A stretch of 63,521 bases of DNA, counting the filler, from Lenisia limosa (Eukaryota; Protista; Breviatea): NCBI GenBank assembly GCA_001655205.1. It is 10 parts of 10 records of this genome, joined end to end, with 100 filler letters (N's around TTAATTAATTAA, not from the genome) between each part and the next. Parts side by side here need not be neighbours in the genome. Positions count along the whole stretch, not along the records: positions 27,959 to 37,091 come from LPNZ01005768.1; 9 more parts are not named here. One strand, given 5' to 3'. Of this stretch, positions 27,641 through 37,091 are shown one piece after another. A program made the translations under genes and the position numbers. Positions within the stretch are counted from its first letter, which is position 1. Each line of letters opens with the position of its first letter. The notes under the pieces are model-generated. The model ran no database searches. It had not been told where the DNA came from and was given only the letters and a program-made list of their open reading frames with translations.

Positions 27641-28028
27641 GAGGAAGATAGGTGTCATAGCTATCTGTGATATATTGATATACGTATCTAGTCAGATTTA
27701 TTTATGTATAAATGATATGATATAATATAATATTCATATTGTATATCATATGTATTATATCATATCATTTACATATATTACATGTATATAGCAATGAGAA
27801 ATAATAAATAAGGATGTATCTGGCCGAACTGTCCACACCATCACGATTATAAGAGATANNNNNNNNNNNNNNNNNNNNNNNNNNNNNNNNNNNNNNNNNN
27901 NNTTAATTAATTAANNNNNNNNNNNNNNNNNNNNNNNNNNNNNNNNNNNNNNNNNNNNGCAAATGAATCCCTTAAAAGAATATATTTGTTATTATATAAC
28001 GAGTTGTGCTTCAGCTAAAAAGAAACAG

Positions 28029-28193
28029 ATGAGCACAAAAATAAATTTAAGTACTGACGGATTAAATCAAAATGAGATTTTAAAACTTATATATTGCAAA
28101 CAGATTAATGAAATACACGAAAAAGGAGATATTAACAAATTAAAAGAAAGATTAGGAATGTTAGAGTTTATCAAAAATTTTCAACGACTCTAA
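28029..28193 (+). CDS. Small hypothetical protein (54 aa)
   Basis: ATG follows an upstream in-contig stop (TAA 28016-28018); open to TAA 28193. No motif. Confidence 0.35.
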   Translation: MSTKINLSTDGLNQNEILKLIYCKQINEIHEKGDINKLKERLGMLEFIKNFQRL

Positions 28194-28403
28194 AGTCCTC
28201 TTGTTACTTTCACGTAACATATCGGAATCAAATTCTTTTATGAACATTTCTACGGAATCAGTAACTAAATATCTTGACATTTCCTTAAACTCTTGATTTG
28301 GAAAATTTAAAGTTTCATATTCCAAAAGAATATTTTTGTAAATGGATTGAAGTTCTGACTTATCTTGGCAGTTCTGCAACTTATCTATTAATGGTGTAAT
28401 CAT
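28161..28403 (-). CDS. Small hypothetical helical protein (80 aa)
   Basis: ORF MITPLIDKLQNCQDKSELQSIYKNILLEYE... with bacterial-like composition; overlaps the 54-aa ORF convergently. Confidence 0.45.
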   Translation of the reverse strand: MITPLIDKLQNCQDKSELQSIYKNILLEYETLNFPNQEFKEMSRYLVTDSVEMFIKEFDSDMLRESNKRTLESLKIFDKL

Positions 28404-28475
28404 AATTATAATATTTTTGACTAAATTAACAAACTAAATCTGACTGACAAGCATAATGCAGAATAAAAGCCGAAA

Positions 28476-28604
28476 GCACAACACCGTATATAAAAAATAA
28501 CTAGAGAAGTGCCGACTCTAAAATTTTGGCGCACTAAAAAACACAACGTAAAACCGAAAAATAACGAATATTTGCACGTTACTTTTCATATACAAACACG
28601 TTGT
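28476..28604 (+). repeat. attC-like recombination site A (3' end runs into a gap)
   Basis: GCACAAC-ACC-GTATAT-A-AAAA-A-TAAC ... GTTA-C-TTTT-C-ATATAC-AAACAC-GTTGT: imperfect palindrome with an AAC...GTT core, 125 bp from inverse core to the core G at 28600. Confidence 0.75.
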
Positions 28605-28787
28605 NNNNNNNNNNNNNNNNNNNNNNNNNNNNNNNNNNNNNNNNNNNNNNNNNNNNNNNNNNNNNNNNNNNNNNNNNNNNNNNNNNNNNNNNNNNNNNNN
28701 NNNNNNNNNNNNNNNNNNNNNNNNNNNNNNNNNNNNNNNNNNNNNNNNNNNNNNNNNNNNNNNNNNNNNNNNNNNNNNNNNNNNNNT

Positions 28788-29921
28788 TCTGAAATGTTTA
28801 GTAAAAGAAAATCTATTGACTATAAATTCAGTGATGCATTAGAATTAGTTGACTATGATGAAAATCGAATTGACTTCCTAATACAAAGATCAGTAATAAG
28901 AGAAAATGGCGATACTTTAGAACTTGATGACTTGTTTTTAGAATTCTTTGAACAGGTTTTAGATGTTAATGAGGAAATCAACCTATCATATATTGACGAA
29001 AACATTAAAAACATAAAGGAAAACATTGATTATTTCTTAAATGAGAATAATGAAAACAGAAAATATGGGTATCTAAGATTCATTAAAAAAACGTTCAAAA
29101 AAATTGGGCTAATCACTCTAAGAAGCGTTGTTGATTTAAGGCGAAATATTGACAACACATTTAAAAACGAATCGAATTACAAAAACAAACAATTAAAGCT
29201 TGAAAACCTTGATGAAAAAAGAACAGTTATCAAAAACTTGATAATTCAAACATTAAAGATTTTAAACGAAGATGAAGTCACCTTTTTTAATAGAGCTTTA
29301 GATGAAGAGTTAAATAGAATTATTATTGACCTTAAACATCAACTCGGGGAATGTTCACACAATTTAATTGAGATTGAAAAACAGATAATTGACTATCTGA
29401 ATCAAATAAAAATTCACGGAAAATTTTTAGAAAAACTAAGAAAATTAAAATACCTAAAAGACCACTTCTTAATTGAAGCGGAAACCGATATTAAACAAAT
29501 TATATCAAACAACAACTCAGTAATTTTTGAACCAAGAACCAGCGAGCCTTTAAATCTATCCATAGATTTTTTAAGAGAAGACGAAAAGGCTTTTGAGGTA
29601 ATAAAAAGAATTGCGAAAAATCATAACGACCGCAAAGTCTTTAGGGCAGAATTGGCCGATAGCATTTCAGATGAATTTCTCGAAAACAGTATTGAAGAAG
29701 AAATAATGATAAATTACGAGGAAATCAAAAATAGTTTTCTTGCAACTAGTGATAACTTATTCAATTTTATTTTAAGTTATGACTTTTCAAAAACTGTTGA
29801 GTTTAATGAACGGGTTACAATCTTCTGCCAAGTTATTTCACTTTACGAGCAAGAATTAGACATAAAAAATAATTTTCAAACATCCAATGGTATAGAATAT
29901 GCTATTGTAACAGCAAGATAA
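28788..29921 (+). CDS. jetA: JetA/MksF-like kleisin subunit of a Wadjet/MksBEFG system; start codon lies in gap 28605-28787
   Basis: Open frame of at least 377 aa (SEMFSKRK...EFFEQVLDVNEEIN...) as first gene of an operon with an SMC ATPase and a Toprim protein. The role is assigned by position and size. Confidence 0.7.
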   Translation, partial: SEMFSKRKSIDYKFSDALELVDYDENRIDFLIQRSVIRENGDTLELDDLFLEFFEQVLDVNEEINLSYIDENIKNIKENIDYFLNENNENRKYGYLRFIKKTFKKIGLITLRSVVDLRRNIDNTFKNESNYKNKQLKLENLDEKRTVIKNLIIQTLKILNEDEVTFFNRALDEELNRIIIDLKHQLGECSHNLIEIEKQIIDYLNQIKIHGKFLEKLRKLKYLKDHFLIEAETDIKQIISNNNSVIFEPRTSEPLNLSIDFLREDEKAFEVIKRIAKNHNDRKVFRAELADSISDEFLENSIEEEIMINYEEIKNSFLATSDNLFNFILSYDFSKTVEFNERVTIFCQVISLYEQELDIKNNFQTSNGIEYAIVTAR

Positions 29922-29925
29922 ACCT

Positions 29926-30498
29926 ATGGTAACTAAATATACTTCAGACATATTTGATGTACTTCGTAGAGGACAATTTATCTGTTCAAACAGTCCAGAC
30001 GAACACATTCAAACACTCTACAAAGTCTTAGAAGATAGCGATACTTTTGAGGATTTGTACGAGTATTTTTATCAAATCAATTACATTTTAGAACAAGGTA
30101 ACGAATATTTTTACTTTTCTCGGAATGAAAGAAATGTAGATTTAGATAGAAAATTAGAAAAGGCATTTGGTTGGATTGATACGATAGATTTTTTCAAAAC
30201 GTTTGACTCGTCTTTTGATGTTGGCTACAGGTTTTCGCCTTCTGATGTCGTTAATCAGTTGAAAAATAATGCGGATTTAAAGTCTAAGTTAGATAATTTT
30301 AAAAAACTTAGTGGCGATAAAAAGAACTATTCAAATAGAGTAAAAAAAATAATTGAAAAGTTAGAAAAAGACAACTTTATAACATTAGAAAACGAAATTA
30401 CTGAATCCTATAAAGTACTCACTTCATTTAACTACCTTAAAGACATTATTTCAATTATAAATATTCCCGAAGAAATAGAAAATGAGATACCTGAGTAA
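29926..30498 (+). CDS. jetB: JetB/MksE-like KITE subunit (190 aa)
   Basis: Typical size; starts 4 bp after jetA and overlaps the SMC gene by 17 bp; predicted winged-helix-type composition (GRFICSNS-like N-terminus, YFYFSR). Confidence 0.75.
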   Translation: MVTKYTSDIFDVLRRGQFICSNSPDEHIQTLYKVLEDSDTFEDLYEYFYQINYILEQGNEYFYFSRNERNVDLDRKLEKAFGWIDTIDFFKTFDSSFDVGYRFSPSDVVNQLKNNADLKSKLDNFKKLSGDKKNYSNRVKKIIEKLEKDNFITLENEITESYKVLTSFNYLKDIISIINIPEEIENEIPE

Positions 30499-33400
30499 AA
30501 TAATCTTTATAAATAGTGCTTCGGTAAAGTATGCTGAAATTGAATTGGATGGTAATGTTCATTTAATTGGCACACAAGGTGTAGGAAAAAGTACTTTGCT
30601 TCGTGCTATTTTATTTTTTTACAATGCGAACAAAACGAAACTAGGGATTCCAAGAGAGAAAAAGGCATTTGATGATTACTATTTTGAATTTCAAAACTCA
30701 TACATTATTTACGAAATTGTAAAAGACGGACTTCCATTTTGCGTGTTAGCTTATAAATCCAATGGCAAAGTTGCTTTTAGGTTTTTTAATTCTGCATACA
30801 AAAGAGAGTTATTTATTGATGAAAATAATAGAGCTTTTGAAAGTTGGGACAAAATAAGAAATGCCTTGGGTAGAGAAATACATTACAGCCCTTTGGTAAC
30901 AAGTTATGAGGAATTTCGAAAGATAATTTACGGAGACAACAAAGGGCTAAAACCTAATTTCAGAAAATACGCACTCATTGAAAGTAAACAATTTCAAAAT
31001 ATCCCAAGAACGATTCAGAATGTATTTCTGAACTCAAATTTAGAAGCTAAATTTATTAAAGACACCATTATAAATTCGTTAAATGAAGTTGAATTTATTA
31101 TTGATATTGAGAATTATTCTAAAAACCACTTACGTGATTTTGAAACGCAAATAAACAATATTAAGATATGGTTTAAGGAAAATAAAAAAGGACAAATTAT
31201 AATAAGGAAGCAAGCTGAGAAAGTTATTGACAAATACAGAATACACAATTTAGTTAACCGTGAAAAGAAAGAACTTGCCATTGTCTTGGGCTCAAGAATT
31301 CAATATGTAGATAGAGAAAAACCAATTTTACTTTCCAGTTATTCCAGAGAAAATGAAGCATTAAGCAAACTGATTGACCAAAGAAATAAATTAGAAGAAA
31401 CCCAGAAAAAAAGAGAACAGAAAATAATTTCTGAAATTGATTATCTAAAAAAAGAACTCTCAAAAGCAAAAGATAAACAAGAGGAATACAATAAATTAAA
31501 CATTAATCAAATTATTCAAAAAGTGTCTCAAAAAGATGCTTTAACTAACAAGGTCAAAGCTTTAGAAGAAGAAAAACAACTTCTTACTTCAAAATTTTCT
31601 GAACTCAACCAAAAGTATGATGCCTTAATTACACAAGCTCAAAACCAAAACCAAGAATTCACGAATCAAAAGATCGCTGAAATCAATAACCTCAATAGTG
31701 AGTTTAGTGATAATAAAACCAAATTATTTAACAATTATCAAGAAATAATAAATCAAATTGGTAAGGACAACAAAGCTGAAAAAGAAAAGGCAATAAATAG
31801 TCTAAACACGATTTCTAATGGAGAAAACAAGGTTAAAAACAAAAAATCGGAATTAAAACACCAAACTTTTTATAGTGATGAAATTCAGCAATGCAAGGAT
31901 GAAAAGAAAAAACTTGAGGACGATATTTCAAATTCTAAAAGCACCATTTTAGATGCTAAAAACCAAATAGCAACCACTCGAAAAGAATGGGAATTTGAGA
32001 CGAAGGAAGTCGAAAGGAATTATCAAATAAGATTCGACCAAGAAACTGAAAAAACTCAAAAACTATCAGACAAAATACAAAGCATAGAAAACAAAATTAG
32101 CCAAAGTAAATCATCACTTTATGGTTGGCTAAACGAAAATTTTCCAAATTGGGAAAACAGTATAGGAAAAGTGATAGATGAAGAAAATGTACTTTTCAAC
32201 ACAGAATTAAACCCTAAAATAATTGATGAAAAAACAACCTCATTTTTTGGAGTTGAACTTAATTTAAGCTCATTAAGTAATCGAATTAAAACTGTTCAAG
32301 AATACAAACAAGAAATTTCTGATTATCAAGAACAGATTAAACAAGTCCAGAATAACATTAAGCAATTAAATTCTGAAAAGGAGAATAATCTACAAAAACT
32401 TAAAATCAAATTCGGTAAAAAAATCAACGCTCTTAAAGATTCAATTTCTGAAAATGAGTATGTCTCTTCACAAAGCGAAGAAAAATTAAAGAAAAACAAA
32501 GTTGAACTAGATGAATGGGTTGAAAAAGCCAAACAAACAAAAGCAACTTTATTGCAACAATTGGAAAATGATTTAGAAGAATTGGCTGCTAAAAAATTGA
32601 ACGCACAAAACAATCTTGACAATATTAAAAATGGAATAAAGAGGAAAATAACCTTAAAAGAGAACGAAAGAAATACTGAGTTAAAAAACTTAGAAGAAGT
32701 AAAAAATGAAAAGATTAATGTCTTGAATACTTCAATCTCAGAAAATAAAAAAGAAACTGACAAACGTATTCAAGAATTAAAAGCGAAGCAAACTAAAGAA
32801 CTCGATAATAAAGGTGCAGACACAAAAAGACTTTCTGTAATTGATGACAATTTAGAAGAAATTGAAAAGAACTTAGCATTTATTAAAAACAACGAACGTA
32901 TTGTAATTGAATATGAAAAAGATAAAAGAGAGCTTTTTGATAATGTACCAACTTTAAAAGCAAATAAAGTTAGTGAAGAAAAAAAACAAGAAGTAATCAC
33001 AGACGAGCATAAAGTTGAGATGAACAAAATGAACAATAGATGTTCTAAACAAGAAAGTGTTGTGAACACTTTAAAATCTCAAATTGATGAATTTGAAACT
33101 GACTTGAAAGCATTTGAAACGTTTAAACTATCAGACGCCTTTGCAACAATTCAAAAATATTTGCTTGATGAAATAAAAGAGTTTGAACATTCTAAAACTG
33201 CAACTTCCATTATTTCAGAAATAAATAGTAAGCATTGGAAAGGAATAGAAACTTTTAAAGAATTGCAGCAAGCTACCAATGCTTTTACAGGTAATTTTGA
33301 CGAACAGAATATTTTTAGTTTCAAGGTAAAACTAAATTCAGACAACGATTATTTAAACTTTGCGTCCGACTTAAAAGAATTCATCGAAGAAGACAAAATA

Positions 33401-34180
33401 GCTGAGTTTGAAAAAAGAGTAAACGAGCGTTTTGCAAACATCATCCATTTGATAGGAAGAGAAACTACCGAACTAAATTCTAAAGAAGCCGAAATAGAAA
33501 AAATAATCAAAAAAATAAATGATGATTTTGTAACTAAGAATTTTGTTCAAGCCATAAAGGAAATGGAAATGCGAACGAAAGAGAGCTCAAATCCAATAGT
33601 GAAACTGTTAGTCAGTATAAAAGAGTTTAATGATGAAAACAATTTAGAATTAGGCGAAACTAATCTATTTACATCTTCAGAGACTAACTCAAAAAATCAA
33701 AAGGCAATAGACTTATTAAAAAAATTGATTGAAGAAATTGAGAAAACAAAAAGTTCCACATTAACCTTATCCGAATCTTTTGATTTACAATTCAGAATAG
33801 TTGAAAATGATAATGATTCAGGTTGGGTTGAAAAACTTTCTAATGTAGGAAGTGAAGGAACAGATGTTTTGGTAAAAGCAATGATTAATATTCTACTATT
33901 AAATGTGTTTAAAGATAATGCTTCCAGAAACTTTAAAGACTTTAAGCTACACTGTATGATGGATGAAATAGGAAGACTTCACCCCAATAACGTAAAAGGA
34001 ATTTTGAGGTTTGCAAACGAACGGAACATATTATTAATTAATGGTTCGCCAACTAGTCAAAATGCGACCGATTATAAATACACTTACAAATTAGCAAAAG
34101 AACAATCTAAAACTGATGCAAAGAAATACATTACAAAAATCAACAGATTGGTAAAAGTAAACGCCAAAGTACTTAGCTAA
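30482..34180 (+). CDS. jetC: JetC/MksB-like SMC-family ABC ATPase (1232 aa)
   Basis: Walker A GTQGVGKST, long central coiled coil, degenerate signature LSNVGSEGT, Walker B/D-loop HCMMDEIGRLH, switch NGSP. Confidence 0.92.
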   Translation: MRYLSKIIFINSASVKYAEIELDGNVHLIGTQGVGKSTLLRAILFFYNANKTKLGIPREKKAFDDYYFEFQNSYIIYEIVKDGLPFCVLAYKSNGKVAFRFFNSAYKRELFIDENNRAFESWDKIRNALGREIHYSPLVTSYEEFRKIIYGDNKGLKPNFRKYALIESKQFQNIPRTIQNVFLNSNLEAKFIKDTIINSLNEVEFIIDIENYSKNHLRDFETQINNIKIWFKENKKGQIIIRKQAEKVIDKYRIHNLVNREKKELAIVLGSRIQYVDREKPILLSSYSRENEALSKLIDQRNKLEETQKKREQKIISEIDYLKKELSKAKDKQEEYNKLNINQIIQKVSQKDALTNKVKALEEEKQLLTSKFSELNQKYDALITQAQNQNQEFTNQKIAEINNLNSEFSDNKTKLFNNYQEIINQIGKDNKAEKEKAINSLNTISNGENKVKNKKSELKHQTFYSDEIQQCKDEKKKLEDDISNSKSTILDAKNQIATTRKEWEFETKEVERNYQIRFDQETEKTQKLSDKIQSIENKISQSKSSLYGWLNENFPNWENSIGKVIDEENVLFNTELNPKIIDEKTTSFFGVELNLSSLSNRIKTVQEYKQEISDYQEQIKQVQNNIKQLNSEKENNLQKLKIKFGKKINALKDSISENEYVSSQSEEKLKKNKVELDEWVEKAKQTKATLLQQLENDLEELAAKKLNAQNNLDNIKNGIKRKITLKENERNTELKNLEEVKNEKINVLNTSISENKKETDKRIQELKAKQTKELDNKGADTKRLSVIDDNLEEIEKNLAFIKNNERIVIEYEKDKRELFDNVPTLKANKVSEEKKQEVITDEHKVEMNKMNNRCSKQESVVNTLKSQIDEFETDLKAFETFKLSDAFATIQKYLLDEIKEFEHSKTATSIISEINSKHWKGIETFKELQQATNAFTGNFDEQNIFSFKVKLNSDNDYLNFASDLKEFIEEDKIAEFEKRVNERFANIIHLIGRETTELNSKEAEIEKIIKKINDDFVTKNFVQAIKEMEMRTKESSNPIVKLLVSIKEFNDENNLELGETNLFTSSETNSKNQKAIDLLKKLIEEIEKTKSSTLTLSESFDLQFRIVENDNDSGWVEKLSNVGSEGTDVLVKAMINILLLNVFKDNASRNFKDFKLHCMMDEIGRLHPNNVKGILRFANERNILLINGSPTSQNATDYKYTYKLAKEQSKTDAKKYITKINRLVKVNAKVLS

Positions 34181-35037
34181 TGAAATTATCTTTAAAAATA
34201 GCAAAAGTATTAGTGCGATTAATCAATGGCGAATCTGTTCCCAATAGTACTGCTAAAAGCCAAATTTTAGAAGAATTAATTGCCGAAAACATTTTATTCA
34301 GGAAAGGGAAACACAAAAAGCATCTAGAACTCATAAATGAAGAAGGACTTCTAATTTACTTGGCAAACCAATTACAAATTAACAATCTACACGATTATAT
34401 TTCTGCATTAGAAAATGAAGACTCTACTCGTGCGGAATTTGTAAAAATTACAACTGATTCTAAACACTCAAAAGAGCGAACATTTAAAGGCTTTTTAGTT
34501 AATAGTTATACAACGATAAAAGCAGAATTAAACGACCAAGAAATTATCATCAACCCCTCTAAAGGTAGCTTTATTTTTATCTATGACTATGAAACATTTA
34601 AAATACCTAAAGGAATAACAGTTGTTGGAGTTGAAAATCCAAGAAACTTTAGACACATTCAAGAACAGAAATATTTATTTGAAGATATCAATCCATTATT
34701 CATATCTCGTTATCCACAGAACCAAAATAAAGATTTTATTAAATGGATGAAGTCTATACCAAATAATTACCTACATTTTGGAGACTTTGATATCGCAGGA
34801 ATTGGAATATATGTAAATGAATATAAATGCTATTTATCAAATAAGTCATCATTTTATATTCCGAACAATATTGAAATGGATTTAAAGAAAAACGGTAATA
34901 GAAAACGATTTGACAACCAAAAAATAAACTTTGATATTAAAAAAATACAAGAAACTGCAATCAAAGATTTAATAAGAATAATTAACTCAGAAAAGAAAGG
35001 ACTTGACCAAGAGTATTACATTAAAGCCAATGCATAA
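34180..35037 (+). CDS. jetD: JetD/MksG-like Toprim-domain nuclease (285 aa)
   Basis: Toprim motifs VVGVENPRNF (catalytic E) and YLHFGDFDIAGIGIY (DxD); translationally coupled to jetC by a TAATG overlap. Confidence 0.85.
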   Translation: MKLSLKIAKVLVRLINGESVPNSTAKSQILEELIAENILFRKGKHKKHLELINEEGLLIYLANQLQINNLHDYISALENEDSTRAEFVKITTDSKHSKERTFKGFLVNSYTTIKAELNDQEIIINPSKGSFIFIYDYETFKIPKGITVVGVENPRNFRHIQEQKYLFEDINPLFISRYPQNQNKDFIKWMKSIPNNYLHFGDFDIAGIGIYVNEYKCYLSNKSSFYIPNNIEMDLKKNGNRKRFDNQKINFDIKKIQETAIKDLIRIINSEKKGLDQEYYIKANA

Positions 35038-35040
35038 AGC

Positions 35041-35099
35041 CATACACATTTGCAATTCGCACCAACCAACGCTAAAGCCAAAAATTGCAAAAGAGTATG
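35041..35099 (+). terminator. 17-bp stem-loop after jetD (possible terminator or RNA-stability element)
   Basis: CATACACATTTGCAATT (35041-35057) pairs with AATTGCAAAAGAGTATG (35083-35099) with 2 mismatches. There is no clear U-tract, so the function is uncertain. Confidence 0.4.
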
Positions 35100-35141
35100 T
35101 CTTTGCCAACGCTGACAGACGGACGAAAAAGAAGTACGACC

Positions 35142-35275
35142 GCACAACATTGTGTATAAGCAATAGCGGTTTAAGTGCAAACTTGAGCCGTTTTTTTGTT
35201 TTATTAAAGTATATTGTAATCCGAAAAGTGGCAGCCAAAAATCCGCTACTGCTCATACACGAAACCGTTATGTGC
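35142..35275 (+). repeat. attC-like recombination site B (complete)
   Basis: GCACAAC-ATT-GTGTAT-A-AGCA-A-TAGCGG ... CCGCTA-C-TGCT-C-ATACAC-GAAACC-GTTATGTGC; 126 bp from inverse core to the core G at 35267; same architecture as site A. Confidence 0.8.
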
Positions 35276-35300
35276 AAAACCAAATGAACTATAGTCTTTT

Positions 35301-36170
35301 ATGATTTCCGAACTGAATGAAAATAAATTTTTTAAAACTAAAGTTCATTTAAAAGTCATTTTAGAAGAAGGATTTAGAATAATTGATGAAAATAAATCTA
35401 ACTTCAATATTTATTATAGTCTTTTCAAAAGGTTTATTTATAGTTTTGAGTCATTAAGTTTACTTTTAAAGGATTACGACCAAAACAAAAGACATAGAGA
35501 ATTTCCAATATCTATAGTTTTAAGAGCTGGACTATTAGATTATTTAATAATCTTGTATCTCGCAACTTTTCAAGCCCAAAAGAAATCTAATCCTGAATTA
35601 ACCGAAACCTACGAGAAAGAAATTGATAAGTTAGTTTCGGAACAAATTAGAAGATTTATAAACATAGCTGAAAAAGACAAACAGTATAAACATTACAATC
35701 ATTCTGACCATCGTAAAGATGTTGATATGTTTACAAAATTATTCCCTGACCTTTTCGACCCCAAAATTCCTATTGACTATAACAAACCTGGAAAATCTTT
35801 ACGATATCAACAAAAGGATGATTTGACAACAAGAGTCATTAGAAAGTGGTTGGACAAAGTTTCAGATGGTTTAAAGAATATTCATTACCAAGATGTTTTT
35901 TATCTATATGATTTATATTCTAAATACGACCATTTTGGAACTGCATCCATGTTATTAGAGTATACAGATATAAACACTGTAAGCGCAAATATCTTTGGTT
36001 CAATTTTTCATATTTGTGAAGGAATTGGATTTTGTACAGATTTAATGAAGGAGGAAATGTTTTGTAAATCAGATTTTGAAAAACTTGATTATGAACTTGC
36101 AGTTTTAAGAGGAACTGTTAATACTAAAACTCTTTATTTAAGTCCTGAATATAAAAAAAGATATGAGTAA
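35301..36170 (+). CDS. Cassette-borne hypothetical protein (289 aa), HEPN/DUF5677-like motifs
   Basis: Intact ORF 25 bp after site B; SIVLRAGLLD and YDLYSKYDHF resemble the R-x3-E and Y-x3-S-x3-H motifs of DUF5677/HEPN-like proteins. Confidence 0.75.
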   Translation: MISELNENKFFKTKVHLKVILEEGFRIIDENKSNFNIYYSLFKRFIYSFESLSLLLKDYDQNKRHREFPISIVLRAGLLDYLIILYLATFQAQKKSNPELTETYEKEIDKLVSEQIRRFINIAEKDKQYKHYNHSDHRKDVDMFTKLFPDLFDPKIPIDYNKPGKSLRYQQKDDLTTRVIRKWLDKVSDGLKNIHYQDVFYLYDLYSKYDHFGTASMLLEYTDINTVSANIFGSIFHICEGIGFCTDLMKEEMFCKSDFEKLDYELAVLRGTVNTKTLYLSPEYKKRYE

Positions 36171-36175
36171 GTTCA

Positions 36176-36186
36176 GCACATAACAA
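36176..36186 (+). repeat. attC-like site C (5' inverse core only; remainder in the 112-N gap)
   Basis: GCACATAAC lies 5 bp after the stop codon and is the exact reverse complement of GTTATGTGC, which ends site B. Confidence 0.65.
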
Positions 36187-36329
36187 NNNNNNNNNNNNNN
36201 NNNNNNNNNNNNNNNNNNNNNNNNNNNNNNNNNNNNNNNNNNNNNNNNNNNNNNNNNNNNNNNNNNNNNNNNNNNNNNNNNNNNNNNNNNNNNNNNNNAA
36301 AAAGTATTGAATGAACAACTCAAGATTAA

Positions 36330-37067
36330 ATGAAATATAAATTGGAAAATAAAGATATCGTTGTTGTAGTTTTAATTATTGTTGCCGCACTTGTTGCTTG
36401 CGGATTATCAGTTTATCAATATTTAGAAGGAGTTAAAAAAGATAAAGAAGTACTACTTAATAACCTCAAATTAGAAAATGCAAATCTTGAATTAAAAGAC
36501 AAAACTAAACAATTATTAAAGTCTCAAAAAAAGTTGATCAAAATTCAAGGTGAAACAATTAAAAATATTGTAGGAGACGGTTTTGCAGAGGCTTCTCCCC
36601 AAATTAAAAACGACGAAATTAAATTAATTTTAAGAAGCAAATCTGAATATAATATTTATAATATTTTAGTTGAAGTTATTAATTTTGACAAAATGAAAAC
36701 TTGCGATTTTGAATTTAAGAATAATGAATATTATTTTCCCGAAAAATGTTATACAGAAAATGTCACAAAAAACAATATAACAACTCTCAATCCAAATACT
36801 TGGGTAGAGTTAAATTACAATTTGAAACCAAATTTTAAAAGTATTAACTTAATTGTAAAACAAATTTCTAACAATATTACTACACTTCAATATTTAATTA
36901 TAAACTACGAAGAGGGTCAAGATAAACATCCATATTTTTTTAGGATATTTGAGATTTCTCGAGCAAATAAGGAATATAAATTACTTTCTCAATCAAAAGA
37001 CAATATTCCTGAAGAAATATGGAAAGAAAGATTTCCATATAAAATGAATTTCAACATAATCAATTAA
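36330..37067 (+). CDS. Cassette-borne membrane-anchored hypothetical protein (245 aa)
   Basis: N-terminal hydrophobic helix IVVVVLIIVAALVACGLSVYQYL, then a coiled-coil-like stretch and a beta-rich domain. Confidence 0.8.
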   Translation: MKYKLENKDIVVVVLIIVAALVACGLSVYQYLEGVKKDKEVLLNNLKLENANLELKDKTKQLLKSQKKLIKIQGETIKNIVGDGFAEASPQIKNDEIKLILRSKSEYNIYNILVEVINFDKMKTCDFEFKNNEYYFPEKCYTENVTKNNITTLNPNTWVELNYNLKPNFKSINLIVKQISNNITTLQYLIINYEEGQDKHPYFFRIFEISRANKEYKLLSQSKDNIPEEIWKERFPYKMNFNIIN

Positions 37068-37077
37068 AGACACCTTT

Positions 37078-37091
37078 TGCTAACACCGGTA
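37078..37091 (+). repeat. attC-like site D (start only; truncated by contig end)
   Basis: TGCTAAC-ACC-GGTA begins 10 bp after the stop codon, mirroring the CAAC-ACC-GTA start of site A. Confidence 0.5.

Follow-up and report, generated by a model that had tools for sequence, protein, structure and literature searches.

A divergent Wadjet/MksBEFG-type operon as a probable single integron-type cassette in a marine Xanthomarina genome

The window analyzed here, a stretch of 63,521 nucleotides from assembly GCA_001655205.1 of Lenisia limosa, includes one part (positions 27,959 to 37,091, record LPNZ01005768.1) in which a four-gene operon, jetABCD, lies within an array of attC-like recombination sites of the kind that bound integron cassettes. 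We consider it probable that this divergent Wadjet/MksBEFG-type operon is a single integron-type cassette which has spread as a unit between three orders of bacteria. The cassette would extend from just after the R' G of the preceding attC (site A) to the G of its own 135-nt attC (site B), with a leader named U, the four genes, a trailer named D and its own attC in that order, and it would have spread among the Flavobacteriales, Cytophagales and Chitinophagales via site-specific recombination at G|TT, with excision as a circle as a presumed step. By analogy with the Wadjet systems that have been studied, the jetABCD product would be a loop-extruding machine that cleaves small DNA circles, plasmids among them.

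The operon was found in the genomes of 40 species, nearly all of which keep the layout of 398, 190, 1232 and 285 amino acids (aa). BLASTN comparison of L001 (ENA ERZ3820729 NODE_17, a 211-kb ungapped contig retrieved through an exact match to the JetB protein) with operon loci from other genomes separated these into three classes. In the first class, formed by Roseivirga echinicomitans (L008), Marixanthotalea marina (L013) and an Edaphocola metagenome-assembled genome (MAG; L014), nucleotide identity was 93-94% over a span from L001 8677/8679 to 15241/15256, that is, from G|TT to the R''/L'' of the downstream attC, and the flanks were unrelated. JetA was 97% identical across the three orders (Flavobacteriales, Cytophagales and Chitinophagales), compared with 76-89% for a host gene between genera of the Flavobacteriaceae, which points to horizontal transfer. 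The second class was a lineage of about 74% identity present in Nonlabens, Mesonia, Tamlana, Winogradskyella, Lacinutrix, Wenyingzhuangia and Gillisia, whose operons are also flanked by attC and whose neighbors differ from genome to genome. Both sides of the operon carried an attC in 4 species, and a single side did so in 7 others. A first-pass annotation of this DNA had made its cassette reading depend on orthologous operons recurring between such sites with different neighbors, and this is what both classes showed, with breakpoints at G|TT in the first class.

Other junctions of the array behaved in the same manner. In L002, an independent metagenome scaffold, homology to L001 opened exactly at the G of the first junction of the array (L001 8082), after the 3' half of an attC. 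In sponge and tidal-flat metagenomes, the cassette that follows the operon (cassette 3) was found on separate contigs at a depth about 2x that of the jet genes, behind a different attC and with other sequence before position 35262, 5 nt from G|TT. Taken from sequence comparison, the unit bounded at 28601 and 35267 appears to have moved as a whole between distantly related bacteria.

Four observations weigh against the cassette reading. About 25 orthologous operons, which make up the third class, share the coding region alone, without any attC; in Tenacibaculum maritimum, for example, the operon has McrBC genes and a tyrosine integrase next to it. The inner stem and the loop of attC differ among the cassettes of about 94% identity, whose homology ends in R''/L'' (L001 15241-15256), and L014 alone keeps a site related to site B, so that the sites have either been exchanged or diverged faster than the cargo. 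No integrase was found within 8 kb upstream of the window array, the adjoining left 1.2 kb is non-coding, and remnants of an integrase sought in this 1.2 kb were not found. In Vibrio cholerae, a cassette with attC sites 4 kb apart was not recovered, and recovery of cassettes declines with their size (bioRxiv 10.64898/2026.03.17.712381).

The last two points, together with a synonymous divergence (dS) of 0.1-0.3 between the closest copies of the jet cassette, which indicates that transfers between these were not very recent, are also in favor of a fossil cassette that was captured once, is now too long to be mobilized and has been kept by vertical descent or by transfer of larger segments. We consider such a fossil improbable, since in copies from four genera and three orders the cassette is common and the flanks never are, since the lineage of about 74% identity (Nonlabens, Mesonia, Tamlana and Winogradskyella) again shares the cassette with neighbors that are different in each genome, and since 17 other cassettes of 3.2-6.8 kb with the same type of leader, described below, were found behind 38 upstream contexts.

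Two decayed copies of the operon were also observed. One, at L040:9464-10864, retains only the jetA start, the jetC end and jetD, and the other, at L050:4620-5807 in a Bacteroidales MAG (37% identity lineage), has a jetA with an in-frame stop. Copies with 62-82% protein identity were present in L041, L045 and L051, on contigs labelled as Bathymodiolus endosymbiont and Bacteriovoracaceae MAG, and represent either cross-phylum transfer or binning contamination. A plasmid collection contained only distant JetD-like homologues (31-38% identity).

The readable segments of the part (27959-28604, 28787-36186 and 36299-37091; 8,839 bases in total) are each 100% identical to L001, which allowed both assembly gaps to be filled. 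Gap 1 (28605..28786) has 182 N in place of 178 real bases (L001 8684-8861); L002 contains the identical 178 nt, and four Logan contigs cover most of the fill with zero mismatches. The fill opens with GC, which completes the R' box GTTGTGC, continues with a non-coding hairpin leader of about 105 nt and then reaches the jetA ATG (L001 8800), encoding the first 21 codons of jetA in a reading frame continuous with the visible part to give 398 aa. Both the completion of GTTGTGC and the jetA start had been predicted for the gap at 28605-28787. Gap 2, with 112 N in place of 120 nt, covers the greater part of attC site C, and both assembly gaps fall on attC repeats. With gap 1 filled, the Wadjet-like cassette (28601..35267 on the + strand, the strand of all window features given below unless stated) has a real length of 6,663 bp (L001 8680-15342). 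The earlier proposal of a four-gene cassette of about 6.67 kb thus stands as to the single four-gene unit, with its length, 6,667 bp by window positions, corrected to 6,663 bp. The host of L001 is Xanthomarina, as identity of the histidine ammonia-lyase reaches 97-99% with X. gelatinilytica but only 76-89% with other genera of the Flavobacteriaceae, and the window array is chromosomal, with at least four co-oriented cassettes, in a marine Xanthomarina genome.

The limits of the cassette were set by the homology breakpoints, the gap fill from L001 and the attC sites themselves. Sites A, B and C, and a fourth of which the piece contains only the start, are built alike: an R'' box ending in AAC, a 3-nt spacer and a stem opening with GTRTATA lead to a variable loop, which is followed by a return stem ending in CATAYAC, a 6-nt spacer and GTT. 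Site A (28474..28608) has its R'' box GCACAAC at 28476-28482 and its crossover G at 28600, and its last bases fall in the N run. Site B (35140..35275), the jet cassette's own attC, has R'' GCACAAC at 35142-35148 and its crossover G at 35267. Site C, which belongs to cassette 3, starts at 36177 with GCACATAAC and lies mostly in the second N run. In alignment A2, which comprises 13 attC-like sites of this 135-nt family from five species, 87.9% of the pair cells were standard, as opposed to 22-41% in controls with the 3' partner slid, and compensatory changes were present at 13 of the 21 pairs. A covariance model built from A2 (R1) was scanned with filters off over L001 8000-17224 and gave 99 bits for site A (E ~1e-19 to 1e-21), 114 bits for site B, which is also supported by its fold, and 96 bits for site C, all of them co-oriented with the genes. 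No other site in this range, gap 1 and the intergenic junctions included, scored above 13.7 bits (E 0.078; partial matches). The view that no attC-like site separates the genes was therefore upheld, with A, B and C alone detected by R1, and an additional attC in the gap at 28605-28787, which would have spoken against a single unit, was not detected in the filled 178 nt.

A second feature of the cassettes concerns their 5' ends. The bases that follow G|TT are complementary to the R'' of the same cassette, as seen for TTATGTGC with GCACATAA in cassette 3 and for TTAGCA with TGCTAA in cassette 4, and the two elements co-vary between copies of the jet cassette, being TTGTGCGG/CCGCACAA in the window, TTGGGCAA/TTGCCCAA in L013 (Marixanthotalea) and TTGTGCAT/ATGCACAA in L029 and L049. 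This complementarity reads as the signature of a unit able to close into a circle across one attC.

Regarding the genes, the operon has the Wadjet/MksBEFG architecture and is a divergent subtype of it. jetA (28725..29921, with its start in the N run) encodes a putative kleisin-like protein of 398 aa, jetB (29926..30498) a 190-aa protein of the MksE family (PF21980, E 2.7e-43), jetC (30482..34180) a 1232-aa SMC-like ATPase that matches PF12128 (DUF3584) over its full length (E 8e-58), and jetD (34180..35037) a 285-aa protein with a winged-helix-like N-terminal part and a Toprim domain (DUF7281) with E152 and D202-x-D204. The tight coupling of the genes was confirmed, the three junctions being a gap of 4 nt, an overlap of 17 nt and an overlap in TAATG. 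JetC carries the Walker A motif GTQGVGKS and the Walker B motif CMMDE, and all four genes are under purifying selection (dN/dS, the ratio of nonsynonymous to synonymous divergence, of 0.07-0.22; 0.08-0.12 for jetA). The order of (putative) kleisin, KITE/MksE, SMC-like ATPase and Toprim nuclease genes and their tight coupling are the same as in Wadjet/JetABCD (MksBEFG).

In JetD, residues E152 (VVGVEN) and D202/D204 (HFGDFD) correspond to the Toprim E...DxD and were invariant in an alignment of 94 JetD relatives. The AlphaFold model of JetD (pLDDT 95) matched Topo VI-A/Spo11, the MksG nuclease and JetD in Foldseek, and alignment with VIA-align of residues 100-284 of this predicted model gave Z values of 13.1 for MksG, 11.9 for Topo VI-A and 11.6 for JetD, with about 6 for generic Toprim. 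The Toprim domain aligns with those of Corynebacterium glutamicum MksG (PDB 8b7f) and Pseudomonas aeruginosa JetD (7til) with E...DxD kept, whereas these solved chains have 365-374 residues compared to 285 aa here. In Pfam, JetD matched DUF7281 only; one of its relatives also matched PF09983, which we take to be the Pfam family of the JetD C-terminal part. More than 1,800 JetD relatives were found at 90% clustering, chiefly in Flavobacteriia, and an exhaustive search gave 396 clusters at 50% identity, mostly of about 280-290 aa among those listed.

Other results count against the assignment to Wadjet. PADLOC models of Wadjet types I-III gave only weak matches to the N-terminal part of JetC (E 4e-6 and 4e-3) and its Wadjet profiles gave none for JetA, JetB or JetD, and searches of PDB by sequence and by profile with JetA-D returned no meaningful match to solved JetABCD/Wadjet chains. 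JetA had no Pfam, NCBIfam or PDB match, and its kleisin-like assignment comes solely from gene order and from language-model feature similarity (a value of 0.98 with a cluster named 'DUF3375', and values of 0.83-0.96 with those named MukF, JetA and Pfam 'MksB' (PF28010)). With as few as 14 sequences in its alignment, all at least 69% identical, JetA gave an AlphaFold model with a pLDDT of 44, which was excluded from the fold search. Since the PADLOC profiles match only the JetC N-terminus, and weakly, and no solved Wadjet chain matches by sequence, we describe the operon as a divergent subtype. The Wadjet/MksFEBG identity given in the first-pass annotation is accordingly kept for the four-gene architecture (PF21980, PF12128, Toprim E...DxD and MksG-like fold), while the PADLOC typing that it had suggested placed the system outside the type I-III models.

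That the PADLOC analysis makes no Wadjet call, and that Pfam names such as MksE are of condensin type, could also be expected of a housekeeping MksBEF-type condensin for chromosome organization. We regard this as highly improbable for an operon which is patchily distributed and horizontally transferred, which has as its fourth gene a JetD/MksG-type Toprim nuclease with an invariant E...DxD, and whose neighbors include restriction-modification, HEPN, OLD-type and TIR genes. For jetABCD as a Wadjet-type operon, anti-plasmid activity would be expected by analogy with the studied systems.

The genes are enclosed by two related non-coding elements. The leader with hairpin U (28601..28706; L001 8680-8785) is conserved, lies nearly entirely in the N run and follows the pattern TTGTGCGG...GCACAAAC...ACATTTGG-loop-CCAAAAGAG...TTTGCCAACGCT. 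The 3' trailer with hairpin D (35040..35120) is a direct repeat of U, and both form one hairpin family with the stem borders ACATTTG and AAAGAG, a TTTGCCAACGCT tail and repeated GCCAACGCT boxes. Compensatory changes support 8 of the 13 predicted pairs of this hairpin. U and D could be a promoter or 5' untranslated region, a terminator, or accessory recombination sites.

A metagenome scan with a pattern made of the junction and the leader start, which was meant to recover jet cassettes, returned 52 contigs, none of which encodes JetA (0/52). The first 34 nt of the leader were about 91% identical across these contigs, in 38 upstream contexts and with at least 18 downstream cargos, and, by a count on the hit table, 27 of the 52 have a complete attC up to the junction. 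The 17 cassettes with both ends on the contig measured 3.16-6.77 kb; 15 of them have a 5' end that matches their own R'' at 9/9 positions (the observed total was reached by 2 of 10,000 shuffles), and 12 of the 17 have a D-like trailer. The cargo checked in leader-bearing cassettes was mostly multi-gene and of restriction or other defense type. It comprised two cases of a Type IIG enzyme, one with GmrSD and one with a TIR protein; a C5 methylase accompanied by an SNF2 helicase and a protein of the NOV_C type; a set resembling Type III; an MmeI-like enzyme with an AAA_13 ATPase; a Type ISP enzyme; and a further DUF3584 SMC-like set. The exception was L087, with a glycosyl-/methyltransferase protein as cargo.

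Similar cassettes were found next to jet cassettes in genomes. In the array of Marixanthotalea marina, which has at least 14 co-oriented attC sites, a cassette of about 5.8 kb with U-like and D-like ends directly follows the jet cassette (L013:11094-17023) and carries an HTH gene along with genes for a Type I-like methylase of 763 aa that has HSDR_N_2, for a specificity subunit and for an ATPase/Toprim protein of the OLD family. In Nonlabens ulvanivorans, a 3.75-kb cassette upstream of jet (L029:443-4392) has U-like and D-like elements and encodes an MvaI/BcnI restriction enzyme together with a C5 cytosine methylase whose N-terminus is of the Arm-DNA-bind_5 type. Hence the Wadjet-like cassette is near the size maximum of a recurring class of 3-7 kb defense cassettes and not a one-off. 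It had earlier been singled out as unusually large and multi-gene, and it does lie beyond the integron defense cassettes reported so far, but it is not unique, as at least 17 others of 3.2-6.8 kb exist.

Several further observations were made on these elements. L104:1777-6949, within a leader-bearing cassette of 5.5 kb, encodes an 886-aa DUF3584 SMC-like protein and three more genes, and may represent a second SMC-based system in cassette form. Contig depth was 3-17 fold higher over the D trailer (34987-35186) in runs X5, X7 and X8, in agreement with a multi-copy element, and many loose ends of the contigs there led into different genes on the upstream side and different attC sites on the downstream side, where one was identical to the start of the Marixanthotalea jet attC. 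D-like copies sit before the attC of other large cassettes. D-like hairpins also occur on large Persicobacter and Flammeovirga replicons, where the Persicobacter copy follows a three-gene operon with no attC around.

A candidate for the enzyme that serves these sites was found at the head of related arrays. In 6 of the 52 metagenomic contigs, the array begins at its upstream end with a tyrosine recombinase, of 353-390 aa in the complete copies, that is co-oriented with the cassettes (L108:3422-4483 and L083:198-1370 on the - strand, L075:28-468 and L103:8548-8712 on the + strand, and the edges of L068 and L074). Its gene ends 46 nt (L075), 80 nt (L103), 154 nt (L083) or about 110 nt (L108) before a G|TT junction that is not an attC and that has the attI-like form ...ATATA..AC|GTT. 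The first cassette of L108 has GTTATCTGC as its 5' end and GCAGATAAC as the R'' of its own attC. The recombinase has an N-terminal Phage_int_SAM_4 domain, reaches the cut-off of NCBIfam NF040815 ('tyrosine recombinase/integron integrase') and matches archaeal XerA (2.3e-43) and VchIntIA (2a3v, 4.9e-42), with XerD far weaker. With TIGR02249 it scored 214 bits (cut-off 265) over stretches 7-181 and 240-315 of 315, positions 182-239 being skipped, and this match in two stretches suggests that the IntI insertion is short or absent. Judged from its sequence, the array-head recombinase is probably an integron-type integrase without the classical IntI insertion, and recombination at the sites of the window array would be catalyzed by an IntI/XerA-like enzyme of this type.

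The properties of this enzyme also bear on another explanation, namely that the arrays are a Bacteroidota-specific platform which is merely integron-like, with a non-IntI tyrosine recombinase and with cargo swapped mainly by homologous recombination between U and D. The recombinase stays below the TIGR02249 cut-off and matches it in two stretches, reaches the cut-off for NF040815 alone and is co-oriented with the cassettes; on the other side, it matches VchIntIA equally well as XerA. Swapping between U and D would fit a leader about 91% identical across 52 contigs with at least 18 cargos and attC cores that differ between jet cassettes otherwise 94% identical, whereas the homology breakpoints exactly at G|TT and the agreement at 9/9 positions that 15 of the 17 large cassettes show between their 5' end and their R'' are predicted by attC x attC recombination. 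The sites, in addition, display the full attC grammar: the R boxes form an AAC/GTT pair, asymmetries in the L''/L' stem are conserved, and the loop is variable. Bacteroidota have been reported as almost integron-free (PMC9024848; bioRxiv 10.1101/2024.07.02.601686), which also speaks for a separate platform. On balance, we hold this explanation to be rather unlikely, and prefer that of an integron-type cassette.

As a rejected candidate, a 405-aa integrase with Arm-DNA-bind_5 and Phage_int_SAM_5 domains was considered as the array recombinase. It is the first gene of a conserved integrative-element module, is absent from the other arrays and has a Polaribacter homologue without attC nearby, so that it probably belongs to a neighboring element. 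At L053:5864-7393 and L054:9688-11218 (Marixanthotalea and Croceibacter), this integrase lies 177 nt from the first attC and is followed in both by the same 198-aa open reading frame (ORF), and GGTACAAC repeats resembling R'' boxes are present between the integrase and the attC. Many of the contigs that carry the module are about 20 kb long, and the module may target attC arrays.

The window array shares with the integron cassettes of class 1 and Vibrio chromosomal integrons the imperfect palindrome, the R''...AAC and GTT...R' boxes, the covarying L''/L' stem and the variable loop of the sites, as well as co-oriented arrays, the G|TT crossover and the complementarity of the 5' end to the cassette's own R''. 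It differs from them in its additional conserved leader and trailer hairpins, in a recombinase that, in the related arrays, is co-oriented with the cassettes, and in the four ORFs and 6,663 bp of the jet cassette, as integron cassettes usually have one ORF and about 0.5-1 kb. In having four or more attC sites while lacking an integrase over 8 kb, it resembles a CALIN (a cluster of attC sites without a nearby integrase), and it differs from one in that its right end is lost at the contig end and in that related arrays are headed by a recombinase. Like the arrays of Vibrio, which hold small defense cassettes of 1-2 genes (Darracq et al., bioRxiv 10.1101/2024.07.02.601686), these arrays are stores of defense genes, but with whole systems such as Wadjet-like, Type I methyltransferase with specificity subunit and OLD protein, and Type IIG with GmrSD.

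According to a RefSeq-wide survey, integron defense systems 'never exceed 2 components', long loci of the BREX and CRISPR-Cas type are absent, and Bacteroidota are listed among the integron-free clades (bioRxiv 10.1101/2024.07.02.601686). For Bacteroidetes, IntegronFinder 2.0 gave In0 elements alone at first, whereas its newer survey had a single complete integron, that of Salinibacter ruber (PMC9024848). Full-text literature searches for a Wadjet cassette, for DUF7281 and for attC arrays native to Flavobacteriia turned up no report of any of them. Our finding contrasts with the tight limit on cassette size and with the nearly integron-free state of Bacteroidota in these surveys, and a four-component SMC machine of 6.66 kb as a bona fide cassette, one of a family of 3-7 kb defense cassettes in marine Bacteroidota, would widen the known carrying range of integron-type platforms. 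Blind spots in the detection of long-cassette arrays are indicated: by default, IntegronFinder clusters attC sites that are at most 4 kb apart, and it would split such arrays for this reason.

More tentatively, and with a chance that we put a little short of even, these arrays may belong to a distinct, overlooked integron lineage of Flavobacteriia and related Bacteroidota, with a 135-nt attC and a co-oriented IntI/XerA-like integrase without the IntI insertion, which routinely mobilizes multi-gene defense systems of 3-7 kb. If so, the cargo range of the lineage would include Wadjet-like, Type I/IIG/III restriction-modification, OLD-type and TIR systems, U and D around attC may be accessory recombination or expression elements that permit cargo swaps, and a cassette-borne Wadjet could cut excised double-stranded circles and dampen shuffling in its own array. 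This last idea touches on the paradox of a circle-cutting system carried on an excised circle, which is speculative. Wadjet systems cut small double-stranded circles; integron cassettes recombine as folded single strands, with the junction resolved by replication, and a recipient cell has no Wadjet until the cassette is in place. The paradox is for these reasons weaker than it appears. The system also makes a compact divergent Wadjet subtype available for mechanistic work, and long-cassette recombination becomes testable, as does what the unusual recombinase and the hairpins of leader and trailer contribute to it.

The remaining features of the array are small cassettes and its ends. At the left end, the GTTGTGC junction (28003..28009) is preceded by an attI-like TATATAAC-GA box, not by an attC. 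It opens cassette 1 (28004..28600, 597 bp), whose two small ORFs, of about 54 aa on the + strand and 80 aa on the - strand, are convergent and overlapping and have no family match. Cassette 3 (35268..36293), with TTATGTGC as its 5' end, carries an ORF at 35301-36170 for a 289-aa protein without family match. Cassette 4 (36294..37091), with its 5' end TTAGCA in the N run, carries an ORF at 36330-37067 for 245 aa, and its attC, which opens with TGCTAAC at 37078, is interrupted by the end of the piece. As to the right end of the array, the contigs found via the last cassette protein stop there, inside the attC. An Rfam search over L001 6800-17224, which includes U, D and the non-coding region on the left, gave no family match. 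This region (L001:6867-8081) extends over 1.2 kb between a yjeF-like gene and the array, and in it a CTATGGAGTA-like repeat occurs three times in tandem and CCATAC-like boxes form an inverted set.

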